Sequence record: PV764602.1
DNA length: 64,000 nt
Reading direction: 5' to 3' (one strand)
The notes under the pieces are model-generated. The model had not been told where the DNA came from and made no database searches. It saw nothing but the letters and a program-made list of their open reading frames with translations. The first letter of the stretch is position 1; the number at the start of each line of letters is the position of its first letter. The position numbers were made by a program, and so were the translations under genes. Positions 1 through 38,847 of the stretch are shown here, in pieces.

Positions 1-283
1 CTGGCGTTATCGTCCCGAGTTCTGGATGCCGCGTAGCGACATACTTTGCCGTAGCAAGGTTTACGTGCCCGACGCCGAAGTGCTTGCCTCCTGCGTCTGT
101 CGTTATCCTGCCCAGCGAGGACTCTCGGAAGACGAGTCCGGGCAGCATGTCCGAAACTCCATACTCCGCGCCAATCTGTGCAGACAGGTGCAGTACGGTT
201 TGCTGTTTCGGGGTAAGCTTTAGTGCCATCGCCTCTGACGCGAACGGCACAAACATAAGAAGCATAGCGAGAATGAAGCGCAT
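1..283 (-). CDS. Secreted lytic transglycosylase (SLT)-like protein, runs off the window's left edge
   Basis: Hand translation from ATG at 283: MRFILAMLLMFVPFASEAMALKLTPKQQ...LPGLVFRESSLG...HFGVGHVNLATAKYV. Signal peptide, ES catalytic motif and G-x-x-Q/H motif; GAGG SD. Not in the ORF track because it is incomplete. Confidence 0.6.
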   Translation of the reverse strand, partial: MRFILAMLLMFVPFASEAMALKLTPKQQTVLHLSAQIGAEYGVSDMLPGLVFRESSLGRITTDAGGKHFGVGHVNLATAKYVATRHPELGTITP

Positions 284-386
284 GTTAACCTCATGGGTGC
301 GGTGGCCCTGACTGTCCTTTATGTCCGGGTCACATTGTCTACTCAAGCTCCGCCGGTGTACGGCTGTAGAGGATTAATGGGAAGGG

Positions 387-719
387 TTAGAAGATGGTTA
401 CAGCAAGAACGGCCCACATGACTTTACACAACACATGCAAACCTTGATCCACGTTGATTCCGATTAAGCGTTCGCTCTTGAGAAAATCAATTGCGAAGTG
501 ACACGCAGTTTCCAGTACACCCAGCAGTGCGGAGCCTGTTATGAGAGCAACCGCACCACCATGAATCATGGCGTGTGCAGTCAGCGCATGCCACCAAGGC
601 ACGTGCTTGTCTCCAGTACGTCTACACTTGTTTGCTGCGATGAATGGTCCCTGTAATGGATAGTCGGCCAAGGCATGACCAACTATCAGGAAGAACAGAA
701 TGGATAGGAACTCGGTCAA
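387..719 (-). CDS. DUF3307-family membrane protein
   Basis: GHALADYPLQ, HAMIHG, HFAIDFLK and DQGLH motifs typical of DUF3307. Confidence 0.8.
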   Translation of the reverse strand: MTEFLSILFFLIVGHALADYPLQGPFIAANKCRRTGDKHVPWWHALTAHAMIHGGAVALITGSALLGVLETACHFAIDFLKSERLIGINVDQGLHVLCKVMWAVLAVTIF

Positions 720-1141
720 TCGTTGTCCTCGATTTCTTCGTCTTCATCGTCCGGATGAAGCTCCGAGAAGGTTCCGTCGGCGTTCTTGACTTGGGTAGGC
801 AACGCGGTAAGCAACTTACCTTCGTACCAATCGCCAATGCCCCGCCAGAAGCTGCCACCCTGACCAGTGTAGCTAGTTCCCGAATTCTTGCGGTAGCCCA
901 TGAACTCCAACACGTAGCTAAAGAAAGCACACAGCAGCGGCCACCAATAGGTAAGGTAGAACTCACCCATCTTGGCTTCGGGCTTCTGCACCTTGTAGAC
1001 CTTCATCTGCCAGCGCAAATGGGAGAAGGCGTTGGCCACTCCGATCACAAGAAGCTCAAACAGGAACAACAAAAGCAGGATGCCAAGTAGGCTCCATACC
1101 AACACACCTGTTCCGAAGAACAACGTTTTCATATAGCTCAC
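716..1141 (-). CDS. Hypothetical membrane protein with acidic tail
   Basis: ORF with two hydrophobic segments; overlaps both neighbours by 4 nt. Confidence 0.65.
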   Translation of the reverse strand: MSYMKTLFFGTGVLVWSLLGILLLLFLFELLVIGVANAFSHLRWQMKVYKVQKPEAKMGEFYLTYWWPLLCAFFSYVLEFMGYRKNSGTSYTGQGGSFWRGIGDWYEGKLLTALPTQVKNADGTFSELHPDDEDEEIEDND

Positions 1142-1680
1142 TCAACAACCTCCTGATTGGCTGGGTCTGGCGTCATGTCGTACCATTCATGCCCCTCGTA
1201 GAACGGAGCCACTCCGACCACACCGCCAACATCATCATGCAGGGAGGGTGCCACAGTATCTCCGAATTCCTTGGAAGCAACGTACCGCCATTTGCGCGGG
1301 AGGCCGGTATCGTGTTTGCCGGTAGGGTAGCAAAGCGAACGGCCTTGGTAAAAGAAGAAGCATTGATCGCCAATGCGAACACCGAGCTCGGCATTGTCGT
1401 TTACTACCCACTTGACTTCGCTGGCGAGGATTGCTTCGCGCGAAGACGGTCCAGCTGCCGAACGCATCATGCTGAGATACGATCGGAAGTCTACGATGTT
1501 GGTAACACTCACGCGCATCACTGAGCCATTAGGCCAGCCCACTAGGGCCTGCGGTGAGAATAGGACCACCTCCACGTAGTCATCGGTCACCGTCCATCCC
1601 GTAATGAAGATGGGATTAGGCGAACCATTCACTTCCTTGTTGTATGTCCTGATAGCTGCTTCAACTTCCGTTGCTTCCAT
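1138..1680 (-). CDS. Hypothetical phage protein
   Basis: 180-aa ORF in operon context; contains VKWVVNDNAELGVRIGDQCFFFY. Confidence 0.65.
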   Translation of the reverse strand: MEATEVEAAIRTYNKEVNGSPNPIFITGWTVTDDYVEVVLFSPQALVGWPNGSVMRVSVTNIVDFRSYLSMMRSAAGPSSREAILASEVKWVVNDNAELGVRIGDQCFFFYQGRSLCYPTGKHDTGLPRKWRYVASKEFGDTVAPSLHDDVGGVVGVAPFYEGHEWYDMTPDPANQEVVE

Positions 1681-1688
1681 ATCGCACC

Positions 1689-1961
1689 TTACAAAGTCCC
1701 TAGTTCTTTCCGACGCCGCAGTGCCCTACGTAGGTCTGCAACGTTTCCGTATTCTGCCGAATCTTCAATCATGCCGCTGACTTCGCGCAGCAGCGTGTAA
1801 CGCTGTGCAATCACGTCTGAGCGCACAAACCATCCGTTACTCAGAGTGAGCATGTTGTTCGTAACCGGGATGGCCGCTGCGTCCACGCCAAGGGTAGTGG
1901 CGAGCTTGCTGCGTACAATCTCAAGATCGGCCTCAAAGGTCTTGTTCGTGTTTGCTGCCAT
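1689..1961 (-). CDS. Hypothetical protein
   Basis: ATG at 1961 preceded by GGAGG SD. Confidence 0.6.
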   Translation of the reverse strand: MAANTNKTFEADLEIVRSKLATTLGVDAAAIPVTNNMLTLSNGWFVRSDVIAQRYTLLREVSGMIEDSAEYGNVADLRRALRRRKELGTL

Positions 1962-1984
1962 TTGATCCTCCAAGAAAAACTGAA

Positions 1985-2002
1985 AGGGCCCTCCGTGGCC
2001 CT
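1985..2002 (-). terminator. Terminator-like hairpin with ACGGAG hexaloop (CsrA-type site) after csrA
   Basis: Minus strand AGGGCC-ACGGAG-GGCCCT followed by TTCAGTTTTTCTT, 10 nt after the csrA stop. Confidence 0.7.
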
Positions 2003-2011
2003 ATCGGTGTA

Positions 2012-2248
2012 TCAGGTTGCTTCGCTTTCCGCACCCGAAGTGACTTCGGTTGGGCTAGTTGACTTGGCAAACGGCACGCCGCGCTGGATGCGTTCGTGGA
2101 CTTCCTGACGATTGACCGGGGTTTCCTTCGGTGCGTCAATACCGATTTTCACTTGATTGCCCTTGACACCAAGGATACGCACCGTAGACATATTCGAGCC
2201 GGTGCCAATCATGACTGCTTCACCAATGCGGCGAGTAAGAAGCAACAT
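2012..2248 (-). CDS. csrA: Carbon storage regulator CsrA/RsmA homologue
   Basis: [15 protein letters not shown]...[33 protein letters not shown] matches the CsrA consensus, including the Arg equivalent to E. coli R44. Confidence 0.95.
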
Positions 2249-2506
2249 TTTTTGTTTCTCCGTGAAAGTAGTGGGCGACTTTCTTGGTCAGCCCTAGTGA
2301 ATTGAAAAACGAATGAGACGTTCCGTGTTAGACCTAACCACGCATTCGATTGCTGTGTCCCTAGGTGGTGCTGCGCATAGGGCGCAGCTTGTCAGAGCGC
2401 ATATCCAACAAGCTGCGAGCGTCAGAGGGCTCCAATCGGATGCGTGTAGATCGTTAATCCTTACGTGTTTGAGTGGTTGCTTGCGCGTGATTCAATCAAG
2501 GTGCTG

Positions 2507-2866
2507 CTATACCTTATTTACAGTATCCGAGCTACCCATTTGAGCGAAAGCGGAACGCCAACTATCCATGCGTGCCTGCTTTTCTGGATCAAGGGGCAGG
2601 CTGTGATAGAAGGGGTCATGGTCCTTGACCGTCCTCCCTGTGATGGTCAGCATGGTCACGTCGTTCGACCGCACCGCACAAGAGCGCAGGCAACCGGGAC
2701 ATATGTGAACGTACTCCTGCCCGTGAGGCACATACAGCATCATCGGCGGTTCATGCTCAGGATGCTGGCACGGCTTCCACGCTTCCTGCACGGGGCGCAT
2801 GTGGGATTGGATTTTCTCTTCCAGTTCAGAGAAGTCCGTCTTGATGGTAAGCTGTTGCTTGTTCAT
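2507..2866 (-). CDS. Hypothetical protein with Cys/His motif
   Basis: ORF with CQHPEHEPP and HICPGC; start placed at MNKQQ. Confidence 0.55.
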   Translation of the reverse strand: MNKQQLTIKTDFSELEEKIQSHMRPVQEAWKPCQHPEHEPPMMLYVPHGQEYVHICPGCLRSCAVRSNDVTMLTITGRTVKDHDPFYHSLPLDPEKQARMDSWRSAFAQMGSSDTVNKV

Positions 2867-3069
2867 TGCTCGATCATCCCAAGTTCTTGGGCCCGAAGAA
2901 GAGCCACGTGTTTCGTGTTGGCTTCCCACAGGATCGAATCGGTCCGATGCTTGGCCACGTCGGGGTCATGGTTGAACTCGTTCATCAACGCCTGACCATA
3001 GCGCTGATGCTGCGGCTTGGTGCCGAAGAACTTCTTGTCGAAAGCGACCAGTGCGTTTGCGGAAATCAC
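2863..3069 (-). CDS. Hypothetical protein
   Basis: GTG at 3069 with GGAGG SD; 4-nt overlaps with neighbours. Confidence 0.55.
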   Translation of the reverse strand: MISANALVAFDKKFFGTKPQHQRYGQALMNEFNHDPDVAKHRTDSILWEANTKHVALLRAQELGMIEQ

Positions 3070-3428
3070 TTTGCCTCCATAGCATCGGCGAGGGTCAGGG
3101 TTGCGACATAGGGGACCGCAACCGTGGACATTGCGATGAACTCCCAATCACCCATCGGATCAGGCGGTACGAAATGCGCGTCCTTGACCTGAACTCCCTT
3201 GCTTTCCAGATAGCGGAGCACTTCGTTGCGCCAGTCTTCATTTGCCATCCACTCCCACCCACCTAGGTCCGTATTGCGACGGGGCAGGCGATAGAAGCGT
3301 ACCACGCGATCCTGCTGTGCAGCTTCGGCAACCAGCGAGACGAAACGCTCGGCTGCCTCGAAGCCAGTCTCAGTGGGCACAGCACGGCCGATGATGGGAA
3401 GGGAGCGAAGGGTGGCGATCAGTTTCAT
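3066..3428 (-). CDS. Hypothetical protein
   Basis: ATG at 3428 with AAGGAG SD. Confidence 0.6.
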   Translation of the reverse strand: MKLIATLRSLPIIGRAVPTETGFEAAERFVSLVAEAAQQDRVVRFYRLPRRNTDLGGWEWMANEDWRNEVLRYLESKGVQVKDAHFVPPDPMGDWEFIAMSTVAVPYVATLTLADAMEAK

Positions 3429-3633
3429 TCGGTTCTCCTTGATCGGGCGCATGACCCGACAATTCCTGAGTCAGTAGATTGGCCAGCGCGGCCATGTGTT
3501 GTTGAATGATGCTTTGCTGCTCACGTTTCTGCTCGGTGGGAGAAAGAGCGGACAACTCGATCCGCTTCTTCCAGAGCGCCGCGTTACACTCACGTGCAAC
3601 TCGACCAACGTGTTCCCGCGTTTTCTTATTCAC
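3370..3633 (-). CDS. Hypothetical protein
   Basis: ORF track; operon context, overlaps the next gene. Confidence 0.5.
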   Translation of the reverse strand: MNKKTREHVGRVARECNAALWKKRIELSALSPTEQKREQQSIIQQHMAALANLLTQELSGHAPDQGEPNETDRHPSLPSHHRPCCAH

Positions 3634-14271: not shown

Positions 14272-14700
14272 TCAGTAGGAAGCGACGTTGACCGAAATGC
14301 GATCAACGATGTTGCGCTGCGCGACTTCATCACACACAAGCATGACCGAAGCCTTGTCGTCTTCCGTAGGGCGATGACCCTGCAACTTCCACTTGGTCCG
14401 AACGTCAACCACGCAACCGCACAGCACGTCAGCGCTAACGTCGTAGCCCGAAGAGTAGCCCAGCATCGGAGCAACTACACTCCGACACTGGCGCATATCA
14501 GCCAAGGCTGCATCGTTCATGGTTGGCTCCGATCCCACCGCAGCCTTGACGCTATTGACGATGCGCGTGGGCAGCTTGCTCGTCTCTTCCGAGAAGAGCT
14601 TGCCCGGGTTGACGTGGACAAAGGCGGCGAGTGCGAGCATCCCGCAAACAACCTTGGCAGCGGCGGCGATGAATTCGTTGGTGGTCGGGGCAGTGTTCAT
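14272..14700 (-). CDS. Hypothetical membrane-anchored protein
   Basis: Start MNTAP with AGGAG SD; N-terminal hydrophobic segment; four Cys in the soluble part. Confidence 0.55.
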   Translation of the reverse strand: MNTAPTTNEFIAAAAKVVCGMLALAAFVHVNPGKLFSEETSKLPTRIVNSVKAAVGSEPTMNDAALADMRQCRSVVAPMLGYSSGYDVSADVLCGCVVDVRTKWKLQGHRPTEDDKASVMLVCDEVAQRNIVDRISVNVASY

Positions 14701-14728
14701 TGCGTTGTCTCCTATGGAGTGCGTTAAA

Positions 14729-14753
14729 GGGCACGCCAAAGTTTGGCGTGCCC
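14729..14753 (-). terminator. Perfect inverted repeat, probable terminator
   Basis: GGGCACGCCAAA-G-TTTGGCGTGCCC. Confidence 0.6.
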
Positions 14754-14759
14754 ATTTCA

Positions 14760-14951
14760 TTAGCGGCGATTGCGAAGGCGGACTGCTTCGTCGCGTTCGT
14801 CAAAGTAGAGCGGCAAGGGATCGTTCTCAATCCCGTTTATCATGTTCTCGATTCGTTGCGCCCCGTCTTCTGCGCGTTGGTCAAGATTGTGTGAAGCGAT
14901 GGCCCGTCTCTTTGCAGGGATGCGCGAGGTGTACTGTACGAGCTTCCTCAT
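14760..14951 (-). CDS. Small hypothetical protein
   Basis: Start MRKLV with GGAG SD, downstream of the extended -10 promoter. Confidence 0.5.
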   Translation of the reverse strand: MRKLVQYTSRIPAKRRAIASHNLDQRAEDGAQRIENMINGIENDPLPLYFDERDEAVRLRNRR

Positions 14952-15028
14952 GTTGTCTCCGATGAGTGCGTTATTTTCAAAGTGTGTTTGGCGTGCTGCA
15001 TACGACAGGCACACTACTCCACACGTAC

Positions 15029-15039
15029 ATTATAGCACA
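15029..15039 (-). promoter_or_regulatory. Extended -10 sigma70 promoter (early)
   Basis: Minus strand TGTGCTATAAT matches TRTGnTATAAT; lies downstream of a hairpin plus T-tract that follows the helicase gene. Confidence 0.7.
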
Positions 15040-15146
15040 AGTAAATCGGGGTGCACGCCACCCCTGATTCCCGTTAAGCTGCCGTTCAGGTTCAGTTCGA
15101 GCACCCTTTGAAAAATCGAGGGGTCGGAACACCCTCGTTTCAGGGC

Positions 15147-17051
15147 CTACGCTTCCTGCGCCCTCGCTTCCTTCATTTCCGCCTTTACCTTATCCAGTGC
15201 CTCCTGCACTTCCTCCAGCCGGGCCATGAGTTCAGGCGACTCGACCGTTTTTAGCTGCTTACGCAAACGGTACATTTGCACCGACAGGGAATTGTACTGA
15301 GGCCAGCGCTTTCGGAAATCCGTCAAGGCTACGCTACGTCGCTTTTTCAGCGCGGCTTTTTTGCCTAGTCCCTTTGTCGATACGCGCTGCTGCGCCTCTT
15401 CGGATCGTAGGTGCTGAACACTCCACGGCGTATAGCTGCCCAACTTCTCCATCCAATTGCGATCCACAATGGGGAGGTGACTCATGCGCGCACAGATCAA
15501 TTCTGCCAGTCCAAGAGTTGGAACCACCGCTATCATAGGTTCCTCGCTCAGATGGTTTCTGATACAACCCCGACCAATTGATTGAATGGCCTTGTCCACC
15601 ACGAAATCCTGTCGGGCATCATACTTGGGGAGCAGGGCTTGCAGCAAACGCTCAAGTGGCTTGTCCGGATTCACTGCGGCCAAGAAAGCTACCACGTTAC
15701 TGTCTCGGTACGCATTCGTACCCTCAACGCGTCCAAGGTCTAGATACTGAAAATGATCCGGGTTGAGTTTGTGCTTGTCGTATCCCTTGTTGACGATGAT
15801 CGGGTTGACGGTAGTAGGGGGATGCTTCTTCCACCACAGCTGCGCGATCTTTTGCACGCACCGCATTTGCCATTCCAAGACATTCAGGTGGCACCCAGCT
15901 TCATCCATGTACTTGACCATAGCGCGTTGCGACTTGCGTAGCTTGGCAGGGTAGGCTCCTGCGGAGTTCATGTACTCGCTTAGATCGCGCAAGGTGCTTG
16001 TAGAGATACCGAGTTCGTCTTTCTTTTCCTTGAATGAAGTCAATTTGCTCTTCGGGAGAATCATTCCGCCATCTAGCAGGTACTTGCTTGGCATCTGCGG
16101 AGTGTCGAGTAGTGGGATCAGGATCAGATGCTTGCACCTGTGCATGATCGTATTCAGCGCCTTACCTAGTCCGCCCTCTGCATATTTCTCCAAGAATTCT
16201 GCGGTGGCATTGCGGACGCTACATCCCTCCATCTTCAACAGATGATACATCTGGGATGTTTCAAAATCTGCTGACAGAATGTAGACAGCTTTGAACCCCG
16301 TGAACGGGTTGGACGGCAGGGTGATCCTCACTAGACGTCGTTTTGATTGGGTGCCTTCAAACATGCCATACACTTTCAAGCGTGTAGGCTGTGACGGCTC
16401 CGGCACAATGCTCAGGTAGAGTTGGTCTAGCTGCTTGTAAGAACGGGCCGCTCCTTTGGTGCGCAGCTGTGCGAGAATCTCCGCCTTTACTGTGCGCCTA
16501 GCAGTGATCTGGCTGATGCCGCTTGCCCCAACCTCCTTGGTCTTGAAGAGACTGTGGAATAACTCTTCTACGCCTGCATCCATCTGAACTGAGTCCAGCA
16601 TATCAGCCCACTTCCGACTTTCGTCAAAGAGCACAGTAGTCTTCTTGAATGCAGGAGATTTGCGCAGGCTGATGAATGCGTGATGGGTGATGAACAGAAC
16701 TGAGCCCGGCAGGAAGTCTACAGCGTCGAGGGAGGACACACCCCTCCCGAGTAGGATATTGTTGATCTTGTCCTTGACCTTCTGCCCGCCCGCATTCCGA
16801 GTCCCCTTACCACTACTGATGCTGATGATTCTGTCGTGGTACTTCTTGGGTAGTACAGCACGCAGACCTTCCATCGTCTGCTCGAAAAGATTGATGGTCG
16901 GGGCCACATAGAAGACGTAACCCCTATGATGTTTCTTGGATTTCTTCTGAGACTTGGCACCGAGAATGATGTGGCGTCTCATGAACGCAATTGCTGCGGA
17001 GGTCTTGCCTGTTCCGGGCGGTGCTGACACGTAGTTGATAGATACAGTCAT
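15147..17051 (-). CDS. SF2 helicase-like protein, candidate origin-binding/replication initiator
   Basis: Walker A APPGTGKT, Ia YVAPTINL, LFITHHAF, Walker B VLFDES, motif VI QSIGRGCIR; basic coiled-coil C-terminus. Confidence 0.75.
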   Translation of the reverse strand: MTVSINYVSAPPGTGKTSAAIAFMRRHIILGAKSQKKSKKHHRGYVFYVAPTINLFEQTMEGLRAVLPKKYHDRIISISSGKGTRNAGGQKVKDKINNILLGRGVSSLDAVDFLPGSVLFITHHAFISLRKSPAFKKTTVLFDESRKWADMLDSVQMDAGVEELFHSLFKTKEVGASGISQITARRTVKAEILAQLRTKGAARSYKQLDQLYLSIVPEPSQPTRLKVYGMFEGTQSKRRLVRITLPSNPFTGFKAVYILSADFETSQMYHLLKMEGCSVRNATAEFLEKYAEGGLGKALNTIMHRCKHLILIPLLDTPQMPSKYLLDGGMILPKSKLTSFKEKKDELGISTSTLRDLSEYMNSAGAYPAKLRKSQRAMVKYMDEAGCHLNVLEWQMRCVQKIAQLWWKKHPPTTVNPIIVNKGYDKHKLNPDHFQYLDLGRVEGTNAYRDSNVVAFLAAVNPDKPLERLLQALLPKYDARQDFVVDKAIQSIGRGCIRNHLSEEPMIAVVPTLGLAELICARMSHLPIVDRNWMEKLGSYTPWSVQHLRSEEAQQRVSTKGLGKKAALKKRRSVALTDFRKRWPQYNSLSVQMYRLRKQLKTVESPELMARLEEVQEALDKVKAEMKEARAQEA

Positions 17052-17109
17052 GTTTCTCTGTCCTAGAAAAGCGCCTGCCGTGGGCGGCGCTGCTGCCTGA
17101 TATTTACAG

Positions 17110-17588
17110 GATTTCTAACTGTAGAAATCAGGCCCAGTTATGGCCTTCCTAAAACCTGGGATTTTTGTGTCAGGATACCTACATGCTCATTTGAATCTCG
17201 GTAGGGTGAGACGCGTAGCGTCGAATCCCTAGGTAGGCGCAGCCTACCACCTAAAGGTGCACTTCTCGGTAAGCCAGCGATCCTTTAGGATCGCTGGCGT
17301 TTCGCGGTCGTCGCTTACGCGCCTCCCTTGAATATCCCTAGGGAGAGAAATTTCCCCCTAGAGTTGTTAGAAATACTACTCTTACTTTATAGGAGTACGA
17401 TTTCTAACAAAATTCCTGAAAAGTTGCATCTGTGTAGCCGGGAACCGACTCTACAGGGCCTCCCGTTCAATCCTGTGTAAAACACCTCACTTTGCAATTC
17501 CTTTAGGAGTTCGATTTCTAACAACCACCCTGCTGCGGCTGTAGAAATCCCTTCCGATTTCTAACACCCTTTAGGAGTTCGATTTCTA
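17110..17588. repeat. Iteron-like (G)ATTTCTA(AC) repeats and palindromes; candidate replication origin
   Basis: Eight copies in both orientations (17110, 17122r, ~17368r, 17399, 17513, 17542r, 17556, 17581). CTTTAGGAGTTCGATTTCTA is exact at 17501 and 17569; 12-bp-arm palindrome at 17273-17298. Confidence 0.65.
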
Positions 17589-17995
17589 CATGCGATCCCC
17601 CTAGACACGCCAGCGTTACAGTAAAATCGCCCTTATTTCGCAGTTCTGGGCTTAATCTTCGGTCTATTACCGTCCCAGCCTCTTGGGAGGGCCTAAACTG
17701 GCAAAATAAGGGTCCGAACTGCCTCATTTGCGGAAATACGTTTCCGGCAGTTCTGCCCTTACGGAACCACCCCGCACGGGTCAGGATCGACCCAGGAGGG
17801 TCAGAATGGGTCCAGAAGGCCAAAATCGCCTAGGATCGAGCATATCTACGCTGGATGCACGTTGTTTTCTCGCAATTTGAGTGTACGAGGGCGATAGAAC
17901 CCCTCAGCCTACCATCACCTGCTCTGGCGTTGTCCGGGTTGGGGTGGAAATTGTGTCATAACAACTTACGGACAACTTCAACTGAGGAACACGTT

Positions 17996-19846
17996 GTGAA
18001 TCTCATTCCAACTGTTTTTGCTTCACAGAAGCCGTCCCTTCCCAGCGCTGAGGTTGCTTTCGCTTCCTTTGGCTGCGAAGGCTGCGGCAACCACTTCTCG
18101 GTGCAGGCCAGCATGAGCACTCCGTTCTGCGTTCTGTGTGGTTGCGACAATACCACTCGATTGCAGGACAGCGTTACTGCCTCCGCTCTGGATCCGATCA
18201 CTGAAGAAGCCAATTGCGCAGTAGTAGAATGCTCCTGCTGCAATCAGCACCTCGTCATGAGTTCCGCGGTCGAAGACAACGGCGTTGTTTTCTGTTCGGT
18301 CTGCGGCACTGACAATCATTTCGTTTCGGAAGCTGCTTCTGACGACGATGATGAGGACGAGGACGAAGAGGACGCTTGCGTCAAGATTGGTCGGGAAAGC
18401 CAAGGCCGCACTGAAGTCGAACTGGAAGCGGACAAGGTCGCTGATCCGCAGACGTTCGTGGATGCCAACGAGCCGCCGCACTACCGCGAGTCGAACCCGG
18501 CCGCTGCGAAGCGCGACAAGAACAACGAAGAAAAGGCCGCTGCCAAGTGTGCATCCGATAAGGATGACAAGGAAGAAGCCAAGAAGGAAGACCCGGGCCT
18601 TGCTCATGAGCGTGAACGCCACGGCATGCTGAAGAAGGATAAGGAAGAGGATGCGGGCTGCGACGAATTCAAGGTCGGTGACCCGCAGACGTTCGTGAAC
18701 AACCACGAACCGGAAAACCACCGCGAGTCCAATCCGGCTGACGCTCATCGTAACAACGAGAACGAAGAAGTGAAGGCAACCAAGGGCGATGCCAACATCG
18801 AAACCACTGCTGCCCGTAAGGGTCGCACCACCGATCTGGACAAGGTTGATCGCTCTGAACTGAGTTCGGTTCCGGGCGCTGATGGCCGTCTGCCTGAGTT
18901 CAAGTTCCCCTCGGAAGAGGAGGTCTACAAGAACAGCGTGGCTAAGGATAAGCTGGATCAGAAGAGCGTGCAGCCGGATGGCACGGACAACTGCGTGAAC
19001 GAAGACGCCTTCAAGGGCGAGCAGTTCAAGGCAGTTCCGCTGCTGGACATTGTGCGTACTTCGCAGCCGGGCAATCCGCCGATTCGCTTTGGCCGTGTCG
19101 AAGCCTCCATCGTTGCATACGTCGGTCCGTACACCGTCGCTGTGCTGGAAGAGGCAAACGTCAACGTCAACGTGCGCGAGCACTTCAAGACTCAGGCGTA
19201 TCTGGAAGCCATCGCCAACAGCGTTGAGATTTCCGGCTTCGATGAGACTCTGGCCTCCTTCGGCTTCGAGCACCTGACCATCAAGAGCAATGATACGGCC
19301 ATCGCCGCCCTTGCTAATGATCGTGTCGAAGCTCGCGCTGCGGAACTGGCCTCGGCTCAGAATCAGGCTTCGCTGGACGAAGTGCAGGCGTGCCTCGCTA
19401 TCGCCAGCACCGGCATCACCAAGCAGTTCTTCGATGCGGGCAACCCCATCCGAGACGCGCTGGTTGCTTCGCTGGAGAATGCGGGCCTGCGCAATCCCCA
19501 CCGTATTGTCGATGAGGCTCTGGCTTCTTCGCAGGACGGGTACAACAAGGCTCTGATCGCTGAGGCGTTCAACCTGCTGTCTATGCCGGTCGAGGCGCGC
19601 AACGCTATTGCCAAGACCGTCGTCGGTTCGCGTCACGTCTATGAACGTGCCAACGCGGGCGTCCACGAAACCACCAGCACCGTCGTTGCTTCGCTGCGTC
19701 AGCCTATGGTCGGCGTCAACGAAGAAGTGACTGCTAGTGTTCCGCGCCAGAGCGGAGTCGGTAGCAATGCGCGCGGCAATGCCGTTCACCGCACTGTTAC
19801 GCAATTGAGGTCGGAAGTGGGTAAGGGTCGCCTGTTCGGCGGCTGA
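17996..19846 (+). CDS. Probable prohead scaffolding/core protein with N-terminal Zn ribbons
   Basis: GTG start with GAGGA SD; four CxxC motifs, acidic/basic middle, helical C-terminus; lies upstream of the capsid genes; highly biased codons. Confidence 0.6.
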   Translation: MNLIPTVFASQKPSLPSAEVAFASFGCEGCGNHFSVQASMSTPFCVLCGCDNTTRLQDSVTASALDPITEEANCAVVECSCCNQHLVMSSAVEDNGVVFCSVCGTDNHFVSEAASDDDDEDEDEEDACVKIGRESQGRTEVELEADKVADPQTFVDANEPPHYRESNPAAAKRDKNNEEKAAAKCASDKDDKEEAKKEDPGLAHERERHGMLKKDKEEDAGCDEFKVGDPQTFVNNHEPENHRESNPADAHRNNENEEVKATKGDANIETTAARKGRTTDLDKVDRSELSSVPGADGRLPEFKFPSEEEVYKNSVAKDKLDQKSVQPDGTDNCVNEDAFKGEQFKAVPLLDIVRTSQPGNPPIRFGRVEASIVAYVGPYTVAVLEEANVNVNVREHFKTQAYLEAIANSVEISGFDETLASFGFEHLTIKSNDTAIAALANDRVEARAAELASAQNQASLDEVQACLAIASTGITKQFFDAGNPIRDALVASLENAGLRNPHRIVDEALASSQDGYNKALIAEAFNLLSMPVEARNAIAKTVVGSRHVYERANAGVHETTSTVVASLRQPMVGVNEEVTASVPRQSGVGSNARGNAVHRTVTQLRSEVGKGRLFGG

Positions 19847-22068: not shown

Positions 22069-22524
22069 ATGCTGGAGACGGCGAGTGACAAGAAAAAGAA
22101 GGAAGAGCAAAAACTGCATAAGGACGTGACGGAAATCATTAAGCACGAACGCCTTGGTGCTCAGAAGGGCCGAGAGGTTGAATTGCTTCAAGCGCATCAA
22201 AATAGATTGAGACACGCAGGGCGCTCCATGCAGGCCGAGAGTCTGAGCCCCCACATTCGCATCAATTCAGTTGAATCCCAAGATCATAGAGAAGCAGCAC
22301 AGAAGCTCACTCATCGACTCAAGGAAAAGGTGGCCTTCCTCAAAGAAAGTGGCCGCGCCGACAAGGGCAAGGAGTTGCACACGCAGCTTGCCGAACAATA
22401 CAAACACTTGCACTATTGGGCCAACGCAGGCCACACCCGCAACAAAAGTCCGACCCTGCTGCGAGCACGCGACGATTTCTACAATCGTCACATGGAGCAT
22501 CAGCGGCTTGCGCTGAAACAATAA
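22069..22524 (+). CDS. Basic His/Lys/Arg-rich protein, probable internal head protein
   Basis: ATG with GAGGA SD; MLETAS N-terminus; His-rich helices. Confidence 0.6.
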   Translation: MLETASDKKKKEEQKLHKDVTEIIKHERLGAQKGREVELLQAHQNRLRHAGRSMQAESLSPHIRINSVESQDHREAAQKLTHRLKEKVAFLKESGRADKGKELHTQLAEQYKHLHYWANAGHTRNKSPTLLRARDDFYNRHMEHQRLALKQ

Positions 22525-24201: not shown

Positions 24202-24885
24202 ATGAAACCCCAGCGAGCACTGATTACGCAGTTGATTCACTCGGTCGGTACTAAGCTCTCTATGGCGTTCCACCTTCCGGCTCCTGTTGTTACTACAGGT
24301 AATAACCCCGTGCAGGAATTCCTGCGTAGGGCTAACGGCCAGAAGGATACTCCGGAAACTCAGTATCCCTTCTTCTACTTGAAGCCACGTGCGTTCAATC
24401 TGAATCGCCAAAGCTACAATCCACATCGGATGGCAAAGAGTCCTCTAGCGTCTCAACTCGGGCGCTTGGATGATGGTACCTTCATTCAGATGAGGTTGGT
24501 TCCAACGTTGGTCACTATTGAAGTTGGGTATGTGACTAACGACAGTCTTGAATACGAGGTATGGGCGGCTAATTGGATCGCGCTGGCGGCTTCGGGTAGG
24601 ATAGACTTTGACTTCAAGTACAACGGCATCAAGATGGGCGTCTTCGTTGAGTTGGCCGATCAGATTGAAATCCCCGAAATCGACCAAGGTGAGGACATAA
24701 ATCAAATAGTGGGCACTACTACCTTGACCCTCCACGGTTACGTAGAAATGCCCGGCCGACCCACTGAGGAAATCGGCACGGTGTCCCCGAAGCTTAGTTT
24801 TTCCACCACAACGGCCACGGCTGACCCCGAACGCTTCACGACCTACGCAAAGGTTGGTCCTAAAACCACTGTGAGAGACCGATAA
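24202..24885 (+). CDS. Probable neck/tail-completion protein
   Basis: Position between head genes and sheath; beta-strand pattern. Confidence 0.45.
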   Translation: MKPQRALITQLIHSVGTKLSMAFHLPAPVVTTGNNPVQEFLRRANGQKDTPETQYPFFYLKPRAFNLNRQSYNPHRMAKSPLASQLGRLDDGTFIQMRLVPTLVTIEVGYVTNDSLEYEVWAANWIALAASGRIDFDFKYNGIKMGVFVELADQIEIPEIDQGEDINQIVGTTTLTLHGYVEMPGRPTEEIGTVSPKLSFSTTTATADPERFTTYAKVGPKTTVRDR

Positions 24886-25343
24886 TGGCATCTGGCAATT
24901 TTATCCCATACGATAATTTCATCAAGGAAGTGTTCAGCGGCGCGCTGAACTACTCCACTGATAACATCCAAGCAATGCTGCTTGGTAACAACTACGTTCC
25001 GGACCGGTCCTCGCACAAGTTCCTGTCGGACGTTGTAACCTACGAGGTTCCTGCTACGGGCGGTTACGCACGACAGGTTCTGAGCAACAAGAAGGTGGAA
25101 CTGCTGTCTCCATCTGGCTTCACCAAGATCACCGCAGATAACATCCTGTTCGGTGAGAACGTAACCATTCGAGCGCGTTACCTTGTTCTGTTCAACGCTA
25201 CCCCGACTGGTACCAACGCCCAGCAACTGATGTTCTACGTCGATCTGAACAGTGGTGGTACGGAAGCGGTGCAGTCCGCCAACAGTACCTTTGCTCTGGA
25301 CATTTCGCCGAACGGCATCTATCAGATTGATCCCATCCAGTGA
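24885..25343 (+). CDS. Virion structural protein
   Basis: SHKFLSDV...GGYARQVL...ITADNILF...ARYLVLFN pattern of small beta-rich virion proteins. Confidence 0.55.
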   Translation: MASGNFIPYDNFIKEVFSGALNYSTDNIQAMLLGNNYVPDRSSHKFLSDVVTYEVPATGGYARQVLSNKKVELLSPSGFTKITADNILFGENVTIRARYLVLFNATPTGTNAQQLMFYVDLNSGGTEAVQSANSTFALDISPNGIYQIDPIQ

Positions 25344-25684
25344 AGACTCTGATCGCTGGGTTGAACATTCAGACGGCAGATGACTACATCAAGAAGACGG
25401 CACTTCGCACAATCATCGGAGTGCCTCTCCCCAAGGAAATCGTCGTCTCTCAGACGTTGGCATTGAACAACAATGTTCCCGTCACCATAACGGGAAGGGA
25501 TGATTCAGTCGTTACGATCATTTCTCCCGCCAAGCCGGTCAAGGTTACGGCACGTATCGGTAATACCCCTGTGGAGTTCCCTGAGAGCATCACGCCTCTC
25601 ATTCTTCCGGGCAAGGTTACCAATATCGTGGTCACCTCCTTGAATGTTGATCCGGTGAATGTTTTCATCCTTCAAGGAGCATGA
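25340..25684 (+). CDS. Hypothetical virion protein
   Basis: 4-nt overlap; beta-rich. Confidence 0.55.
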   Translation: MKTLIAGLNIQTADDYIKKTALRTIIGVPLPKEIVVSQTLALNNNVPVTITGRDDSVVTIISPAKPVKVTARIGNTPVEFPESITPLILPGKVTNIVVTSLNVDPVNVFILQGA

Positions 25685-25685
25685 C

Positions 25686-25952
25686 ATGAGTAATCGTATC
25701 CTTAGCACTTCTACCATCAGCCGCGCCGTCCGCATCCTGAATCCGACCACCGGCGACGTGCAGGAAATTCAGGTACAGCGTGGTCAGTACGAACTGCCGG
25801 AAGGTTACAGTATCGCTGCCGCTGACCTTGCCCTGTATTCCCCGTTCCTTTCGCAGATTGATGTTGAAGGAAAGGTGATTCCGCTGGCTGGGGTTCAGTC
25901 GATCCCTGACACGCCGATTGCGGTGCCCACTAACGACGCTGACGACAACTAA
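25686..25952 (+). CDS. Small hypothetical protein upstream of the sheath
   Basis: ATG at 25686 with AAGGAG SD. Confidence 0.6.
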   Translation: MSNRILSTSTISRAVRILNPTTGDVQEIQVQRGQYELPEGYSIAAADLALYSPFLSQIDVEGKVIPLAGVQSIPDTPIAVPTNDADDN

Positions 25953-25963
25953 GGTAACTTCCA

Positions 25964-27961
25964 ATGGCAAACCCGATTGGTAACAATCAAGCTTCTGACG
26001 TTTATGTCAGTGAGCTTAACCTCAGCACCATCATCACTACGGTAGCAACTTCGGTTGGCGCTATGGTGGGTGCTACTACGCAAGGCAAGCTGGGCCGCCA
26101 GTTGGTCAGCGACTACGCCTCGTTCAAGACGCAGTACGGTCCGAGCAACCCGTCGCAGTCTCGCGTGCACATGGCGGTACGTGATTACTTCACCAAGGGT
26201 GGCGAAGGTATCATCTTCAAGCGCGTCTGTGGTGCCGGTTACAAGTATGCAGGTGTCCTCCTGCAATACACCGGGTCGACTGGTAATCAGACCCTCAAGC
26301 TGACGCCGTATGGCATCGGCGGTGAGAATCCGGCTGACACCATCGACTTCCGCAGCGCCGGTGGCGTGTCGGACTCGAATCAGAACCTGTGCTACATCTA
26401 CGGTATTGGTCCGGGTACTCGTTACAACCAGTACGCGATCAGCATCACCTCCAACAACATCATGCCTCCGGGCAACCTGAGCCTGACGCCTGCCCTTACC
26501 GGCGGCATCTTGCAGGGTGGCACGCAGTACACCTACGGTGTCTCGGCCATGAGTGCCTTGGGTGAAACTCTGACCTCCACCCAGCTGAACATCACGCTGG
26601 AGCAGACCACCAGTGGTTCCGTCGTCATTTCGTGGGACCCGGTCCCCGGTGCCATCGGCTATCGCATCTACGGTCGTTCGACTGGTTCGACTGGCACTGG
26701 CACTGTGTCGCTGGGCCTGATTGGTTCGGTTGGTCAGGGCATCGTGCAGTTCGTGGATACCGGCCGCACTGTTCCCACCACTGTTCCGCCGACTCCGGTC
26801 AACTCGAACAGTAACCGCTTCACGTTCACTGACGTGTTTGCAATCAACGTGTACGATCTGGCTTCCAGCGTCAATGCCCCGGTCGAGACTCACGCTGTCA
26901 CGCTTGCCCCGAGTGTCAACGGTATGCAGCAGCAGCAGGAAATCGAGACGGTCATCAACACGCAGTCGCAGTACATTCGCGTGGTGAGTAACTACCCGAA
27001 CATGACTGTGGCTCCTCCGACCATCTTCACGTTGCAGGCTGTCACGATGAACGGCGGCGCTAACGGCGCAGCTGTGACCTCGGCGGACCTCATCAACGGT
27101 TGGCAGGCTTTCGCTGACAAGGACACCGTGCAGGTTGCCCAACTGATTGACGGCGGCTACGCTATCCCGTCGGTCCAGAAGGCTATGCTGTCGATTGCCA
27201 AGGATCGTCAGGACTGCGTGGTGTTCGGTGACGTTCCGTCCGATCAGCAGAACGCGATTGACGCGGTGGCTTACCGCACCCTGACTCTGAATGAAAACAG
27301 TGATCGCATCATGCTGTTCACTTCGGACATTCAGGAAATCGATCCTGACACCAACTCGTTGGTTTGGGTGCCGGGCTCCGGTGCAGCGGCAGGTTCGGCG
27401 GCGGCTGTGGACAGTCAGATTGGTTCGGGTGGCTCCATCGCAGGCCCGACCTACGGTGCGATTACCACTGCGGTCAAGCTGCGCCACAACTACACCAAGG
27501 CACAGCGTAACATGCTGGCCGGTTCGCAGGTTAACTACTGGCGTAGCCGTACCGGCATCGGTACGTACCTCGCCGAGCAGAAGACTTGCTCGACGCCCAT
27601 TTCGGCCGTCACCTACTACTCTGTGCGTCGTATCTTCGACGTGATGGAGCAGTCGATTGAACTGGCTCTGACCTACTCGCTGCAAGCTCCGAACACGCAG
27701 TTCACTGCGCAGCAGATTGCGAGCATGCTGACTCAGTACCTCAACGGACTGGTTTCGGCACAGCGCATCAACGGCTTCAGTGTGCGAGTGGACAACTCTC
27801 CGGCAGTGCGTGCTCAGGGCAACCTGCAAGTGTATGCGGCCATCGAACCGATCCTGCCCATTGACAAGATCGGTCTGCTGACCATCATCACCCCGCAGGG
27901 CGCCAACTTCGAGGAAATCCTCGGCAACGTGGCTCCGGGCGCAACCGTCTCTGCAACCTAA
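25964..27961 (+). CDS. Contractile tail sheath protein
   Basis: SDVYVSELNLS...VGAMVG N-terminus; RQDCVVFGDVP, WVPGSG, SVRRIFDVMEQSI and EPILPIDKI C-terminal sheath motifs. Confidence 0.92.
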   Translation: MANPIGNNQASDVYVSELNLSTIITTVATSVGAMVGATTQGKLGRQLVSDYASFKTQYGPSNPSQSRVHMAVRDYFTKGGEGIIFKRVCGAGYKYAGVLLQYTGSTGNQTLKLTPYGIGGENPADTIDFRSAGGVSDSNQNLCYIYGIGPGTRYNQYAISITSNNIMPPGNLSLTPALTGGILQGGTQYTYGVSAMSALGETLTSTQLNITLEQTTSGSVVISWDPVPGAIGYRIYGRSTGSTGTGTVSLGLIGSVGQGIVQFVDTGRTVPTTVPPTPVNSNSNRFTFTDVFAINVYDLASSVNAPVETHAVTLAPSVNGMQQQQEIETVINTQSQYIRVVSNYPNMTVAPPTIFTLQAVTMNGGANGAAVTSADLINGWQAFADKDTVQVAQLIDGGYAIPSVQKAMLSIAKDRQDCVVFGDVPSDQQNAIDAVAYRTLTLNENSDRIMLFTSDIQEIDPDTNSLVWVPGSGAAAGSAAAVDSQIGSGGSIAGPTYGAITTAVKLRHNYTKAQRNMLAGSQVNYWRSRTGIGTYLAEQKTCSTPISAVTYYSVRRIFDVMEQSIELALTYSLQAPNTQFTAQQIASMLTQYLNGLVSAQRINGFSVRVDNSPAVRAQGNLQVYAAIEPILPIDKIGLLTIITPQGANFEEILGNVAPGATVSAT

Positions 27962-33926: not shown

Positions 33927-34991
33927 ATGGGATTTTCTATCGGCGGTTTTGTAAAGTCGGCCTCGACTTCTGTGGCCAACTACGCCACCAACACTGCAAA
34001 GGGAGCGATCAACAAAGCTTACGGGTCTGTCACCGAAGCACTCAACCGATCCATCGGTATTGGTGGTAGCCCACTTGAGCAGCGTAAGCTGGCAGATCAG
34101 AATGCGAGTAGCGAGTTGCAGCAAGCCTACACCCCGAACGCCGCGTATCAAGTTATCTTGAGCGCGGACACGGATAACGGCGAGCCCCTAATCGTCTCCG
34201 GCTGGTATGGAGCGGAGACGCTCAACTTCAGTTTTGGTGGTAGCTATGATGCACCATTTGCTCAGGGCCTCCTGAGCATGATGGGCGGTCCAACTCTGGA
34301 AACCATTGCACGTCTGAACGGCGTGCAGTCGGTTACCAAAGATATGACTGCACAGATTTGGCAAGGCGCTACCCGTATCGCCGTGGACATTCCGTTGGTG
34401 ATCGCAGCACAGTACGATGGCGAGCAGGAAATCATGCAGACCATCAACAGCTTGGCCCGTATGGCACTCCCCTCTGAAACTGAAAGTGGCTTCCTCCGCG
34501 CCCCGGGTCCTCGCCCAAATCTGAATCGGGCAGTTGACAACATTGGTGACACCTTCAACAACATTTCCACTGGCTTCAAGGACTTCGCTAAGGAAGCTGC
34601 TTCGGGTGGACTCAATAAGCAGTCCCTGACGCAGGTTCTTTCCGGCGGTCCCAATAGTCTGCTTGGTGCGAGTGCTGAATTCATTGGCTCGCCCGTGCGT
34701 GAAGTGGAGGGCAACATTGCGTTGAAGATCGGTAACATCCTGCACCTAGAGAGTGTGGTGGTTGAGAGCATCAGTCCGACTATCGAATGGCAGTTGGATG
34801 GACGAGGTAAGCCCATGTTTGCAACCATCAACATTCACGTGAGTACGTTCAAAATTCCTACGGCAGAGGAAATGACCAACATCCTCATGCTCAGTGCTCC
34901 CACTCCTAGCCGTGCGCAGAACCAGCAGTCTCAGAACTTCGGTTCGATTGACCTGTTTGGCAACAACATGCAAGATTTCATCGGAGGGTAA
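33927..34991 (+). CDS. Baseplate tube-cap/initiator protein (gp48-like)
   Basis: AQIWQG, FLRAPGP, ESVVVESIS and PMFATINIHVST; follows the tape measure gene. Confidence 0.6.
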   Translation: MGFSIGGFVKSASTSVANYATNTAKGAINKAYGSVTEALNRSIGIGGSPLEQRKLADQNASSELQQAYTPNAAYQVILSADTDNGEPLIVSGWYGAETLNFSFGGSYDAPFAQGLLSMMGGPTLETIARLNGVQSVTKDMTAQIWQGATRIAVDIPLVIAAQYDGEQEIMQTINSLARMALPSETESGFLRAPGPRPNLNRAVDNIGDTFNNISTGFKDFAKEAASGGLNKQSLTQVLSGGPNSLLGASAEFIGSPVREVEGNIALKIGNILHLESVVVESISPTIEWQLDGRGKPMFATINIHVSTFKIPTAEEMTNILMLSAPTPSRAQNQQSQNFGSIDLFGNNMQDFIGG

Positions 34992-37248: not shown

Positions 37249-38181
37249 ATGGGAACGATCACCATTTCAGTGACAGAGCCTTTGCCTACGTTCGACAGTC
37301 TGTATCAGGCAATGCTCCCGAATCTGACGTTCCCTCCGACCGGATTCCAGTGGCCACCCGCCCTCCCCGGTATCCCCACTATGTTTCCCTCTATCAGCTG
37401 CCCTAACATGAGTGGTGTCATGGCGATGGGCCAGTTGATGACCGAGCAGTTGCTCACGTCTGCGTTCATGATGATTAAGCCTATCTCAGAATTCCTAGGC
37501 TTGGCAATGTCTGCCATCCCCAAGATTCCCATCCTGAACATTGGCGTAGATCAGTTGCTCACTATGTCGGGTGATGATTTGATCGCGGCAGCAAAGGGCG
37601 CAATGCCTTCGCTACCTAACCTCTACTTCTCCCTCGACATACCGGACATCAACGTCGTGCAGTGGCTGACGCAGCTGAAGTCTAGCTACCTTATGTCACT
37701 AGCCGGGTACTTGCAAAACATCATTAAGCAGGTGACAGACAAGATCAAGATTCCGGGCATGCCCACGTTGCCTACCATCCCCACGATGGAAGACGTGAAG
37801 CAAATGCTGATAGATCAGATTCCCCCTCCGATCAATGACCTTCGCAACGTTGACCTCAACGCGCTATTGGCCAACATCAGCATCCCAGGCATCCCCTTCG
37901 TTTTCTCCCTGCCGTCGCCTTTCATCCCTAACATTTCGATGCCTGAGATTGACTTCAACGAAATGATTTCGGGACTGTACAATAGCATCGTCATGATGCC
38001 GATGAAGACAATGCAGGACTTCATCATGGACAAACTAAGTAGTGTGATTTCCCTCCAGCTGCCTACGCTGGTTTTGGTCATTCCCACTATTGAGATTCCC
38101 ATTCCGGAAATCCCAATCCCTGTTATCCCGCCGCTGCCTAGCATCCCGGACCTGCCTCCGCTCACCATCCCTGTACCTTGA
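37249..38181 (+). CDS. Pro/Ile/Met-rich hydrophobic protein following the spike
   Basis: About 45 Pro in 310 aa, in (I/L/M)-P-x triads. Confidence 0.7.
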   Translation: MGTITISVTEPLPTFDSLYQAMLPNLTFPPTGFQWPPALPGIPTMFPSISCPNMSGVMAMGQLMTEQLLTSAFMMIKPISEFLGLAMSAIPKIPILNIGVDQLLTMSGDDLIAAAKGAMPSLPNLYFSLDIPDINVVQWLTQLKSSYLMSLAGYLQNIIKQVTDKIKIPGMPTLPTIPTMEDVKQMLIDQIPPPINDLRNVDLNALLANISIPGIPFVFSLPSPFIPNISMPEIDFNEMISGLYNSIVMMPMKTMQDFIMDKLSSVISLQLPTLVLVIPTIEIPIPEIPIPVIPPLPSIPDLPPLTIPVP

Positions 38182-38198
38182 TTCATTGGAGAATCTAT

Positions 38199-38831
38199 AT
38201 GACTATTTCTACCCCTTGGCTATCCGGAGGTAGCGGCCTAACTACTTCTGGCCCCAATGACTTGAAGCCTGCACAGTTCATAGATCAAGTAAAGGCGTTG
38301 CCCTTTGGGCCAGCGCGTTACGAAGCGTGGCCGGGCCCAAACGGTCTTCAGCTTGACCCTAATAAGTTGCAGGGACAGATGGCCACTATTGAGGTTGGCT
38401 CTGCTCTATACAACCTGCTGGCTCCGTTTCTTTTTCATCAGGTCCAGTCCCCAAATAACTATTCGTACAAATTCGATCTATACGATTCCGTTGAGGAGTG
38501 TGTAGAAATACGGGCGTACAAGTTTGAACCTGGTACCACGTTTGATAACGGTGACCATTTCTCCTTCCTCCATACTAGCATGACAGCTGACTCGCATCGT
38601 AAGCTAGTGGCGTTTTGGAATTTGAACTGGACCCTCTCGGATCCAGCCACCATGTCTATACCTCCCCTATATCTCGCCTGTGATTACCCTTGGACCACTT
38701 ATTGGTACGCTGGAGATGATGCACTTCGGATGGTGCCGGGGCCTGTGTGCTGGACTATAGGGCGCATGATGCCCTATATGCCTACTATGTACTGGTTAGA
38801 GGTATTCTTTAAGGGCCCAACTTTCGTGTAA
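38199..38831 (+). CDS. Degenerate 2OG-Fe(II) oxygenase paralogue A
   Basis: Aligns by eye to 39786..40391 (YKFDLY, HRKL, KGPTF); HxD is HFS and the distal His and Arg are lost. Confidence 0.65.
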   Translation: MTISTPWLSGGSGLTTSGPNDLKPAQFIDQVKALPFGPARYEAWPGPNGLQLDPNKLQGQMATIEVGSALYNLLAPFLFHQVQSPNNYSYKFDLYDSVEECVEIRAYKFEPGTTFDNGDHFSFLHTSMTADSHRKLVAFWNLNWTLSDPATMSIPPLYLACDYPWTTYWYAGDDALRMVPGPVCWTIGRMMPYMPTMYWLEVFFKGPTFV

Positions 38832-38847
38832 GCAGGAGGCCCTTGAA

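Follow-up and report, generated by a model that had tools for sequence, protein, structure and literature searches.

We analysed a 64,000-nucleotide (nt) window, positions 124001-188000 (plus strand) of record PV764602.1, from the 228,725-bp genome of PhiXhv-15, a virulent jumbo myovirus infecting Xanthomonas hortorum pv. vitians (PMC13340338). Our subject is a gene for a superfamily 2 (SF2) helicase together with the non-coding spacer upstream of it; the phage paper (PMC13340338) discusses neither this locus nor origins nor termini. Coordinates are those of the window unless the record is named, and whole-genome scans used the public PhiXhv-15 record with gene tables over its full length. Rightward genes run from record position 141,855 through the record end on to 68,528, and leftward genes from 141,051 back to 68,740, forming a 72-kb block of which the helicase is the first gene. 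A preliminary description, made from the sequence alone, had placed here about 940 bp of non-coding, relatively AT-rich DNA between divergent gene blocks, and all of this was borne out. The genome has no other major divergent junction and no longer intergenic region than this spacer, which parts early/middle genes from structural genes and has a GC content of 0.50 versus 0.55 for the genome. Its length is 945 nt when measured from a GTG at 17997 and 804 nt when measured from the GenBank ATG at 17855. No Shine-Dalgarno site precedes the annotated ATG of the 663-amino-acid (aa) rightward gene; the GTG has the Shine-Dalgarno context CTGAGGAAC, which the major head gene also has and which other late genes have in similar form. 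The rightward gene is probably 616 aa long and the spacer 945 nt. The features on which the argument draws are the following, with the strand where one applies.

15147-17051, minus strand: SF2 helicase gene, 634 aa, allele A of a two-allele cassette; annotated 'helicase' (XYR93217.1), phrog_2467.
15149-17742: cassette replaced relative to PhiXhv-16, Ep026 and Ep032 (helicase plus about 690 nt upstream).
17100-17111, minus strand: promoter-like motif, a perfect copy of TCCTGTAAATAT, about 40 nt before the helicase ribosome-binding site and ATG.
17110-17129: palindromic box pair GATTTCTA-ACTG-TAGAAATC, 58 nt before the helicase ATG at 17051.
17110 (plus), 17122 (minus), 17399 (plus), 17513 (plus), 17542 (minus), 17556 (plus) and 17581 (plus): GATTTCTA boxes.
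17368-17375, minus strand: degenerate box TATTTCTA.
17205-17345: GC-rich cluster of hairpins and palindromes, including the palindrome at 17273-17298.
17273-17284 and 17287-17298: arms (12 nt each) of a perfect palindrome centred on CCTTTAGG.
17250 (minus), 17282, 17500 and 17568: copies of CCTTTAGG.
17364-17410: imperfect palindrome of 47 nt, both ends of which are boxes and the centre of which is AT-rich; arms of 21 nt, 86% complementary.
17386-17406, 17500-17520 and 17568-17588, plus strand: direct repeats of 21 nt in an iteron-like array, with extra core boxes at 17542-17549 (minus) and 17556-17563 (plus).

The helicase carries motifs I (GTGKT), Ia (APT), II (DE), III (SAD) and VI (QxIGRGxIR). 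Residues G13, K16, T17, VAPT 49-52, D143, E144, S260-A261-D262 and Q490xxGRGxxR498 are invariant or nearly invariant in 43 homologues. An AF2 model of the protein (pLDDT 88) comprises two RecA-like domains, with insertions, and a tail that is basic and helical, the last 90 aa or so being predicted as two long helices. With the full set of motifs on two RecA-like domains, the protein belongs to SF2, and both the motifs and the basic C-terminus that had been read from the sequence earlier hold up. Pfam identifies a DEAD domain in the N-terminal part only; a scan up to E=5 adds just an N-terminal ResIII match, and profile searches against solved structures gave motif-I-level matches only. The variable insertion at residues 146-256 is an alpha/beta domain (pLDDT 75 when folded alone). 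A winged helix within it, suggested by a weak AbiEi_4 match (E 0.017, residues 166-200), was rejected as unsupported by the fold (Z 3.9).

The cis elements of the spacer are largely private to it. Eleven copies of GATTTCTA occur in the genome, 7 of them inside 480 nt of the spacer; within the window there are 8 against an expectation of 0.88, with 7 in the spacer (17110-17588) and one at 22474. The 17-mer repeat core TAGGAGTWCGATTTCTA has four copies at three or fewer mismatches, all in the spacer and nowhere else in the genome, and CCTTTAGG is found five times in the window where 0.92 would be expected. Two of the direct repeats, at 17500-17520 and 17568-17588, are exactly the same, and the third is 81% identical to them. 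What is found is an iteron-like arrangement, with three genome-unique direct repeats of about 21 nt beside an AT-rich stretch. That stretch, 17364-17413, is the AT-richest 50-mer of the genome (74% AT versus a mean of 45%, rank 1). The 47-nt palindrome at 17364-17410 is a candidate DNA-unwinding element, and the boxes bracket the genome's AT-richest stretch, an origin-like anatomy. Eight boxes in both orientations, an inverted pair 58 nt upstream of the helicase start, a sequence present in four copies, an exact 20-bp repeat and a palindrome with 12-bp arms had all been listed in the preliminary description. We recovered each of them: the boxes as seven copies of GATTTCTA plus the degenerate TATTTCTA, the pair at 17110-17129, the four-copy sequence as CCTTTAGG in the spacer, the palindrome at 17273-17298, and the repeat with an actual length of 21 nt.

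The locus differs sharply between phages that are otherwise nearly the same. PhiXhv-15 and PhiXhv-16 are 97.5-99.9% identical over about 220 kb, and the largest block that fails to align genome-wide is record 138,726-141,742, which comprises the helicase, about 690 nt of upstream DNA and a 227-nt downstream insertion. Identity in the flanks of the cassette is 98.8-99.5% and persists as far as the helicase stop codon on one side and 17742 on the other. Inside it, only a 28-mer, GATTTTACTGTAACGCTGGCGTGTCTAG, and one 65-nt stretch within the helicase gene can be aligned. The two helicase alleles, A in PhiXhv-15 and B in PhiXhv-16, are collinear with 37% aa identity, and no protein other than the helicase is common to both versions of the cassette. 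Among the five phages of this backbone that were compared, the box array is present in the allele-A phages PhiXhv-12 and PhiXhv-15 and missing from the allele-B phages PhiXhv-16, Ep026 and Ep032, which keep only the last 255 nt or so of the spacer (positions 688/691-945 of the intergenic region). Between near-identical genomes the protein and the cis sites vary together in the manner of a specificity module, as seen in two alleles only.

Allele B has elements of its own. Three of the four genome copies of its private box, ACTGTAACG, lie in its spacer, together with two 28-nt direct repeats 162 nt apart and a palindromic pair, CTGTAACGTTACAG, just before the start codon, at the promoter. The AT-richest 50-nt window of PhiXhv-16 (70%, tied first) is in the same spacer, between the two 28-nt repeats. 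Allele B repeats the design of allele A with other sequences, and the module of helicase and cis elements is real, specific to the locus and inherited as a unit with the helicase.

Scanning for spacer segments that recur elsewhere in the genome (copies counted at two or fewer mismatches) identified the promoter-like motif TCCTGTAAATAT. Its 19 copies, 8 of them perfect, are all co-oriented with the local genes, and comparison with the gene table places nearly all just upstream of a start codon. The motif precedes the genes for the clamp loader, primase, topoisomerase, a protein annotated as DNA polymerase III, csrA and the helicase, and the structural blocks contain none of the 19 copies. The motif probably represents the -10-type element of a class of early/middle promoters in this phage group. 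In allele A the palindrome at 17110-17129 directly adjoins TCCTGTAAATAT upstream, at the place expected for a -35 element; in allele B the motif, TCCTGTAAAGGT, is instead followed by the palindrome. Since the palindrome adjoins the promoter in both alleles, a protein that binds the boxes would be placed to control the helicase promoter, and the pair at 17110-17129 is a candidate operator. An inverted copy of the repeat at the promoter of the initiator's own gene is a further iteron-like trait, the promoter here being that implied by the 19-copy motif. Autoregulation of the helicase is supported by this arrangement, provided that the helicase itself binds the boxes. The hairpin cluster lies upstream of the inferred helicase promoter and is therefore more likely to act at the level of DNA, as a cruciform-prone or protein-binding element, than as an mRNA leader. 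The region 17190-17360 around it shows much stronger folding than shuffled sequence does (z -6.2 on the minus and -4.6 on the plus strand), and Rfam has no match in the window's intergenic region.

We consider an autoregulated origin-initiator cassette of 2.6 kb, equipped with its own origin-recognising SF2 helicase, to be the best reading of the locus, with a probability of roughly 45%. That the region is a replication origin is held just as tentatively; that the helicase recognises the boxes seems rather probable. In such a scheme the helicase would be made early from the TCCTGTAAATAT-type promoter, along with other replication genes, and would recognise its private boxes through the core GATTTCTA inside the 21-nt repeat. 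Bound to both ends of the 47-nt palindrome with its AT-rich centre and to the direct repeats nearby, it would use ATP to open the most easily melted DNA of the genome, where the DnaB-like helicase, primase and PolA-type polymerase of the phage could then load. Its binding at the palindromic pair that abuts the promoter would feed back on its own synthesis. Here we infer the identity of the box binder, unwinding and the start of replication at this place, and the sign of the autoregulation.

No other initiator is recognisable in the genome. PhiXhv-15 encodes a DnaB-like helicase, a Toprim primase, a PolA-type polymerase and a UvsW-like SF2 helicase as well as a giant SNF2 protein and a RecA-like recombinase, and no recognised origin-binding protein was found among its replication genes. 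The product annotated in the record as 'chromosomal replication initiator protein DnaA' (record positions 24749-26026) was rejected as a candidate, being actually a clamp-loader AAA+ protein (PF13177, DNA_pol3_delta2, E 7.5e-29). Of the earlier proposal of a one-protein initiator with an origin and autoregulation, a part is supported: the boxes are locus-specific and swap together with the helicase, a box pair adjoins the promoter, the core is AT-rich and there is no rival initiator. No support came from the GC skew, from comparison with the UL9 family or from the fold of the insertion domain.

The GC skew had been suggested as a check on an origin, and it is the first of several observations that weigh against this reading: the cumulative curve has its maximum at about 30 kb and its minimum at about 214 kb of the record, and no extremum at 141 kb. 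(An AT-skew minimum at 142 kb merely follows the switch of coding strand.) Large phages such as T4 can begin replication from R-loops or by recombination and do without a dedicated initiator. The nearest folds to the helicase, those of DinG, XPD and DdmD, belong to repair or defence helicases and not to initiators; the protein has no recognisable sequence-specific DNA-binding fold, and its insertion domain finds no fold match (best structural Z 3.9). The spacing of the boxes (25, 43, 68 and 114 nt) has no helical regularity. The co-variation of boxes and helicase is effectively one exchange event between two alleles. In a crude 10-mer test clear multi-copy boxes were obtained for PhiXhv-15 only, with marginal ones at 3 of 15 other loci. 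Finally, no homologue of the helicase was found on plasmids, and family members also occur at Burkholderia prophage ends and in islands, with methyltransferase, resolvase and reverse transcriptase genes.

The alternative that survives best takes the locus as a purely transcriptional hub. The boxes would be operators, bound by the helicase or by a helicase-dependent factor, that time the leftward early block and perhaps the rightward head operon, while replication starts elsewhere or without a fixed origin. We regard this as unlikely, if a serious competitor. The position of the locus at the junction of early/middle and structural genes suits it, as does the lack of an origin signal in the GC skew. 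The palindromic pair of boxes lies directly against the promoter motif in allele A, and in allele B it overlaps the region of the start. A second region of the genome also bears on this question. The third-longest intergenic region (540 nt, record 34.2-34.75 kb; 34226-34692) holds four TGCCA-N4-TGGCA palindromes, and the same palindrome stands before several TCCTGTAAATAT promoters. It follows from this recurrence before promoters of the same class that repeat clusters in this genome can be regulatory. This region, which also holds two of the five AT-richest 50-mers of the genome, might serve as a cluster of regulator-binding sites or be another candidate for the origin. A set of operators does not, however, readily account for eight boxes spread over 480 nt and lying up to 500 nt from the sole recognisable promoter. 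Nor does a simple operator need the AT-richest stretch that stands beside the boxes in two unrelated alleles. An SF2 ATPase would be an unusual transcriptional repressor, and the side facing the head operon (17742-17996) is conserved between the alleles and free of boxes.

A less probable alternative is an accessory helicase engaged in conflict (defence, counter-defence or exclusion of co-infecting phages) and made hypervariable by an arms race, with the upstream DNA as its private regulatory or RNA-coding leader. We think this improbable. In its favour, no other variable block between the near-identical phages is as large as the cassette, and 17190-17360 folds strongly; the best Foldseek matches are to DdmD, a plasmid-defence helicase, and homologues stand at the ends of prophages and, in an island, alongside a resolvase and two reverse-transcriptase genes. 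However, PADLOC models gave only Cas3 or HamB matches of 60-90 residues around Walker A, at E 3e-6 or weaker, so that no defence family is matched beyond that region, and the protein, unlike DdmD, is without a nuclease or other effector domain. Its promoter belongs to a class common to replication genes, and in phiRSL1, BCSR5, Motura and the uncultured phage L018 its homologue is the first gene of a block of replication/recombination type. An RNA-coding leader likewise finds no counterpart in Rfam, either in the spacer or in ten related loci, where only tRNAs were found at the families' own thresholds.

Known packaging-initiation (pac) sites, such as those of P1 and SPP1, are made up of short boxes that recur in both orientations around a centre that can bend. 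That the repeat array, which resembles them, is a pac site or the physical ends of a genome whose termini are not reported (PMC13340338) is hardly credible, as the terminase gene lies 87 kb off, the boxes co-vary with the helicase while the terminase is about 99% identical in its aligned parts and differs only by a 1341-nt insertion, and the helicase promoter has a box pair placed on it.

To place the origin-initiator reading in a wider setting, we turn to the family of the helicase. Proteins of the phiRSL1 ORF295 / phrog_2467 family are true homologues, with 26-48% identity over the full length, and are encoded by phiRSL1, BcepSauron/Saruman, BCSR5, Motura, PhiXhv-16 and metagenomic contigs; PhiXhv-12, Ep026 and Ep032 carry a homologous helicase as well. 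In relatives the gene is followed by one for a RecD/PIF1 helicase, a 5'-3' exonuclease or RNase H, and in the four phages named above it is the kept first gene of its block. Protein-language features link a homologue to YonV-like phage helicases. We found no paper on the function of YonV, none treating this helicase locus or the ORF295-like family, and none mapping an origin or naming an initiator for phiRSL1-type jumbo phages.

Conservation of the boxes beside orthologues had been put forward as another check, and the box sequences are not conserved. In phiRSL1, Motura and the uncultured 217-kb phage L018, private inverted or direct repeats lie upstream of the helicase; an inverted pair flanks an AT-rich core in phiRSL1, and a further repeat copy is found at the gene start or at a promoter-like motif in phiRSL1 and L018. 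The repeat array is best developed in PhiXhv-15 and is not universal. All nine further loci have their local AT maximum upstream of the helicase, at a distance of 37-446 nt, which is a weak test because intergenic DNA is generally AT-rich. We put forward, with considerable doubt, a broader proposal, namely that the ORF295-like SF2 proteins are the origin-recognising initiators of this jumbo-phage clade, each allele being tied to private boxes and to the most meltable DNA and exchanged together with them.

Some members of the family were noted for their settings. BcepSauron has two helicase paralogues far apart in its genome, 42% and 35% identical to the PhiXhv-15 helicase. Members on Burkholderia chromosomes were found at L025:4829-7785, in L024 and at L026:5373-7875, each preceded by 0.6-1.7 kb of gene-free DNA. 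The prophage-end member lies beside an N6_N4 methyltransferase, and the island member lies with a resolvase and two RVT_1 genes. The insertions in L025 and L026 are in the same chromosomal neighbourhood, and both have long two-copy repeats upstream.

If the origin-initiator reading is true, PhiXhv-15 provides the first candidate origin and initiator for the phiRSL1-type clade, and an SF2 helicase joins the initiator types known from prokaryotic viruses. The two alleles, in phages 98-99% identical elsewhere, form a natural specificity-swap experiment, and the hypothesis is therefore directly testable. These phages are under development for biocontrol of bacterial leaf spot in lettuce, and differing replication modules matter when near-identical phages share one cocktail. 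Should the region turn out to be no origin, a promoter class of replication genes has been defined, the 'DnaA' annotation corrected, and a long private non-coding upstream region found always to accompany this helicase family.

Other features of the locus and its surroundings are the following.

17602-17629, minus strand: 28-nt element GATTTTACTGTAACGCTGGCGTGTCTAG, unique in the genome; the sole part of the variable DNA in common with allele B, which has two copies.
17742-17996, plus strand: stretch that both alleles conserve, containing tandem 20-mers (17778-17817) and, before the GTG at 17997, the Shine-Dalgarno site.
14727-14952, minus strand: 227-nt insertion just downstream of the helicase, which makes an extra small open reading frame (ORF) at 14760-15014 (84 aa) that is missing in PhiXhv-16.

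The segment at 17742-17996 is presumably the leader or control region of the rightward head-gene operon. A consensus scan of 14700-18100 gave no sigma-70 match, and terminator-like sites only downstream of the helicase. A 7-mer enrichment search upstream of 24 late genes gave no late-promoter motif. The intergenic region holds no convincing ORF for a small protein; a 101-aa ORF with a TTG start (17518-17823) spans the cassette boundary. The 84-aa ORF at 14760-15014 has no Pfam match.

Several observations lie beside the main argument. Both arms of the 17364-17410 palindrome read TTAG-N6-TACTC, one mismatch from TTAG-N6-TACTA, the LexA box of Xanthomonadales; we treat this resemblance as a lead only. 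Over the whole genome, cumulative GC skew falls near-steadily from about 30 to about 214 kb, whatever the coding strand, and then rises through the polymerase/helicase region. PhiXhv-15 and PhiXhv-16 differ in other places too. The large-subunit terminase gene of PhiXhv-16 (1-3582), compared with that of PhiXhv-15 (record 1-2241), has an in-frame insertion of 1341 nt after nt 603 that looks intein-like. A 667-nt segment of the baseplate region (38168-38836), with a GenBank ORF at 38199-38831 (210 aa), is in PhiXhv-15 and not in PhiXhv-16. Further variable blocks are at record 100.2-102.4 kb and 188.0-190.3 kb.

The system closest in anatomy is UL9 with oriS/oriL of herpes simplex virus (HSV), to whose origin-binding helicases the preliminary description had likened the protein. 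The anatomy fits: an SF2 helicase would be the initiator, inverted boxes flank an AT-rich centre in a palindrome, and further boxes lie alongside. The likeness does not extend to the protein, for which neither Pfam to E=5 nor solved-structure profiles gave any sequence or profile match to the UL9 family or to any initiator, and whose nearest folds are instead those of DinG, XPD and DdmD. No counterpart of the large C-terminal DNA-binding domain of UL9 was recognised, the PhiXhv-15 helicase ending in about 90 aa of long helices, and host and virus realm differ as well. The DinG/XPD/DdmD helicases give the closest structural alignments, covering both RecA-like domains with insertions (Z 13.0-13.8 over 339-425 residues; Foldseek E about 1e-8), yet identity is only 8-12% and TM-scores are 0.3-0.4. 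In contrast to them, the PhiXhv-15 helicase lacks a nuclease domain, and its insertion domain has no fold match; no Fe-S cluster cysteines of the XPD/DinG type are among the invariant or near-invariant columns of the 43 homologues.

In logic the nearest parallels are iteron replicons with an autoregulated Rep protein (pPS10 RepA, F RepE and pSC101; lambda O/ori; P4 alpha/ori-crr; SaPI Rep/ori). Their use of repeats beside an AT-rich region, of a repeat copy at a promoter and of module swaps is well established. As in those replicons, direct repeats stand here beside an AT-rich region and an inverted repeat copy stands at the promoter of the candidate initiator, and this protein and the repeats are exchanged as one specificity module. 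The differences are that those initiators are winged-helix or SF3/primase-helicase proteins whereas the candidate of PhiXhv-15 is an SF2 helicase, that the repeats of PhiXhv-15 are irregularly spaced, and that no plasmid carries this helicase family. Cumulatively, these comparisons suggest a cassette analogous to HSV UL9/oriS in its anatomy and to iteron replicons in its logic, built on an unrelated and uncharacterised SF2 family; an ORF295-like initiator with its origin would then be an independently evolved counterpart, in bacterial viruses, of UL9/oriS.

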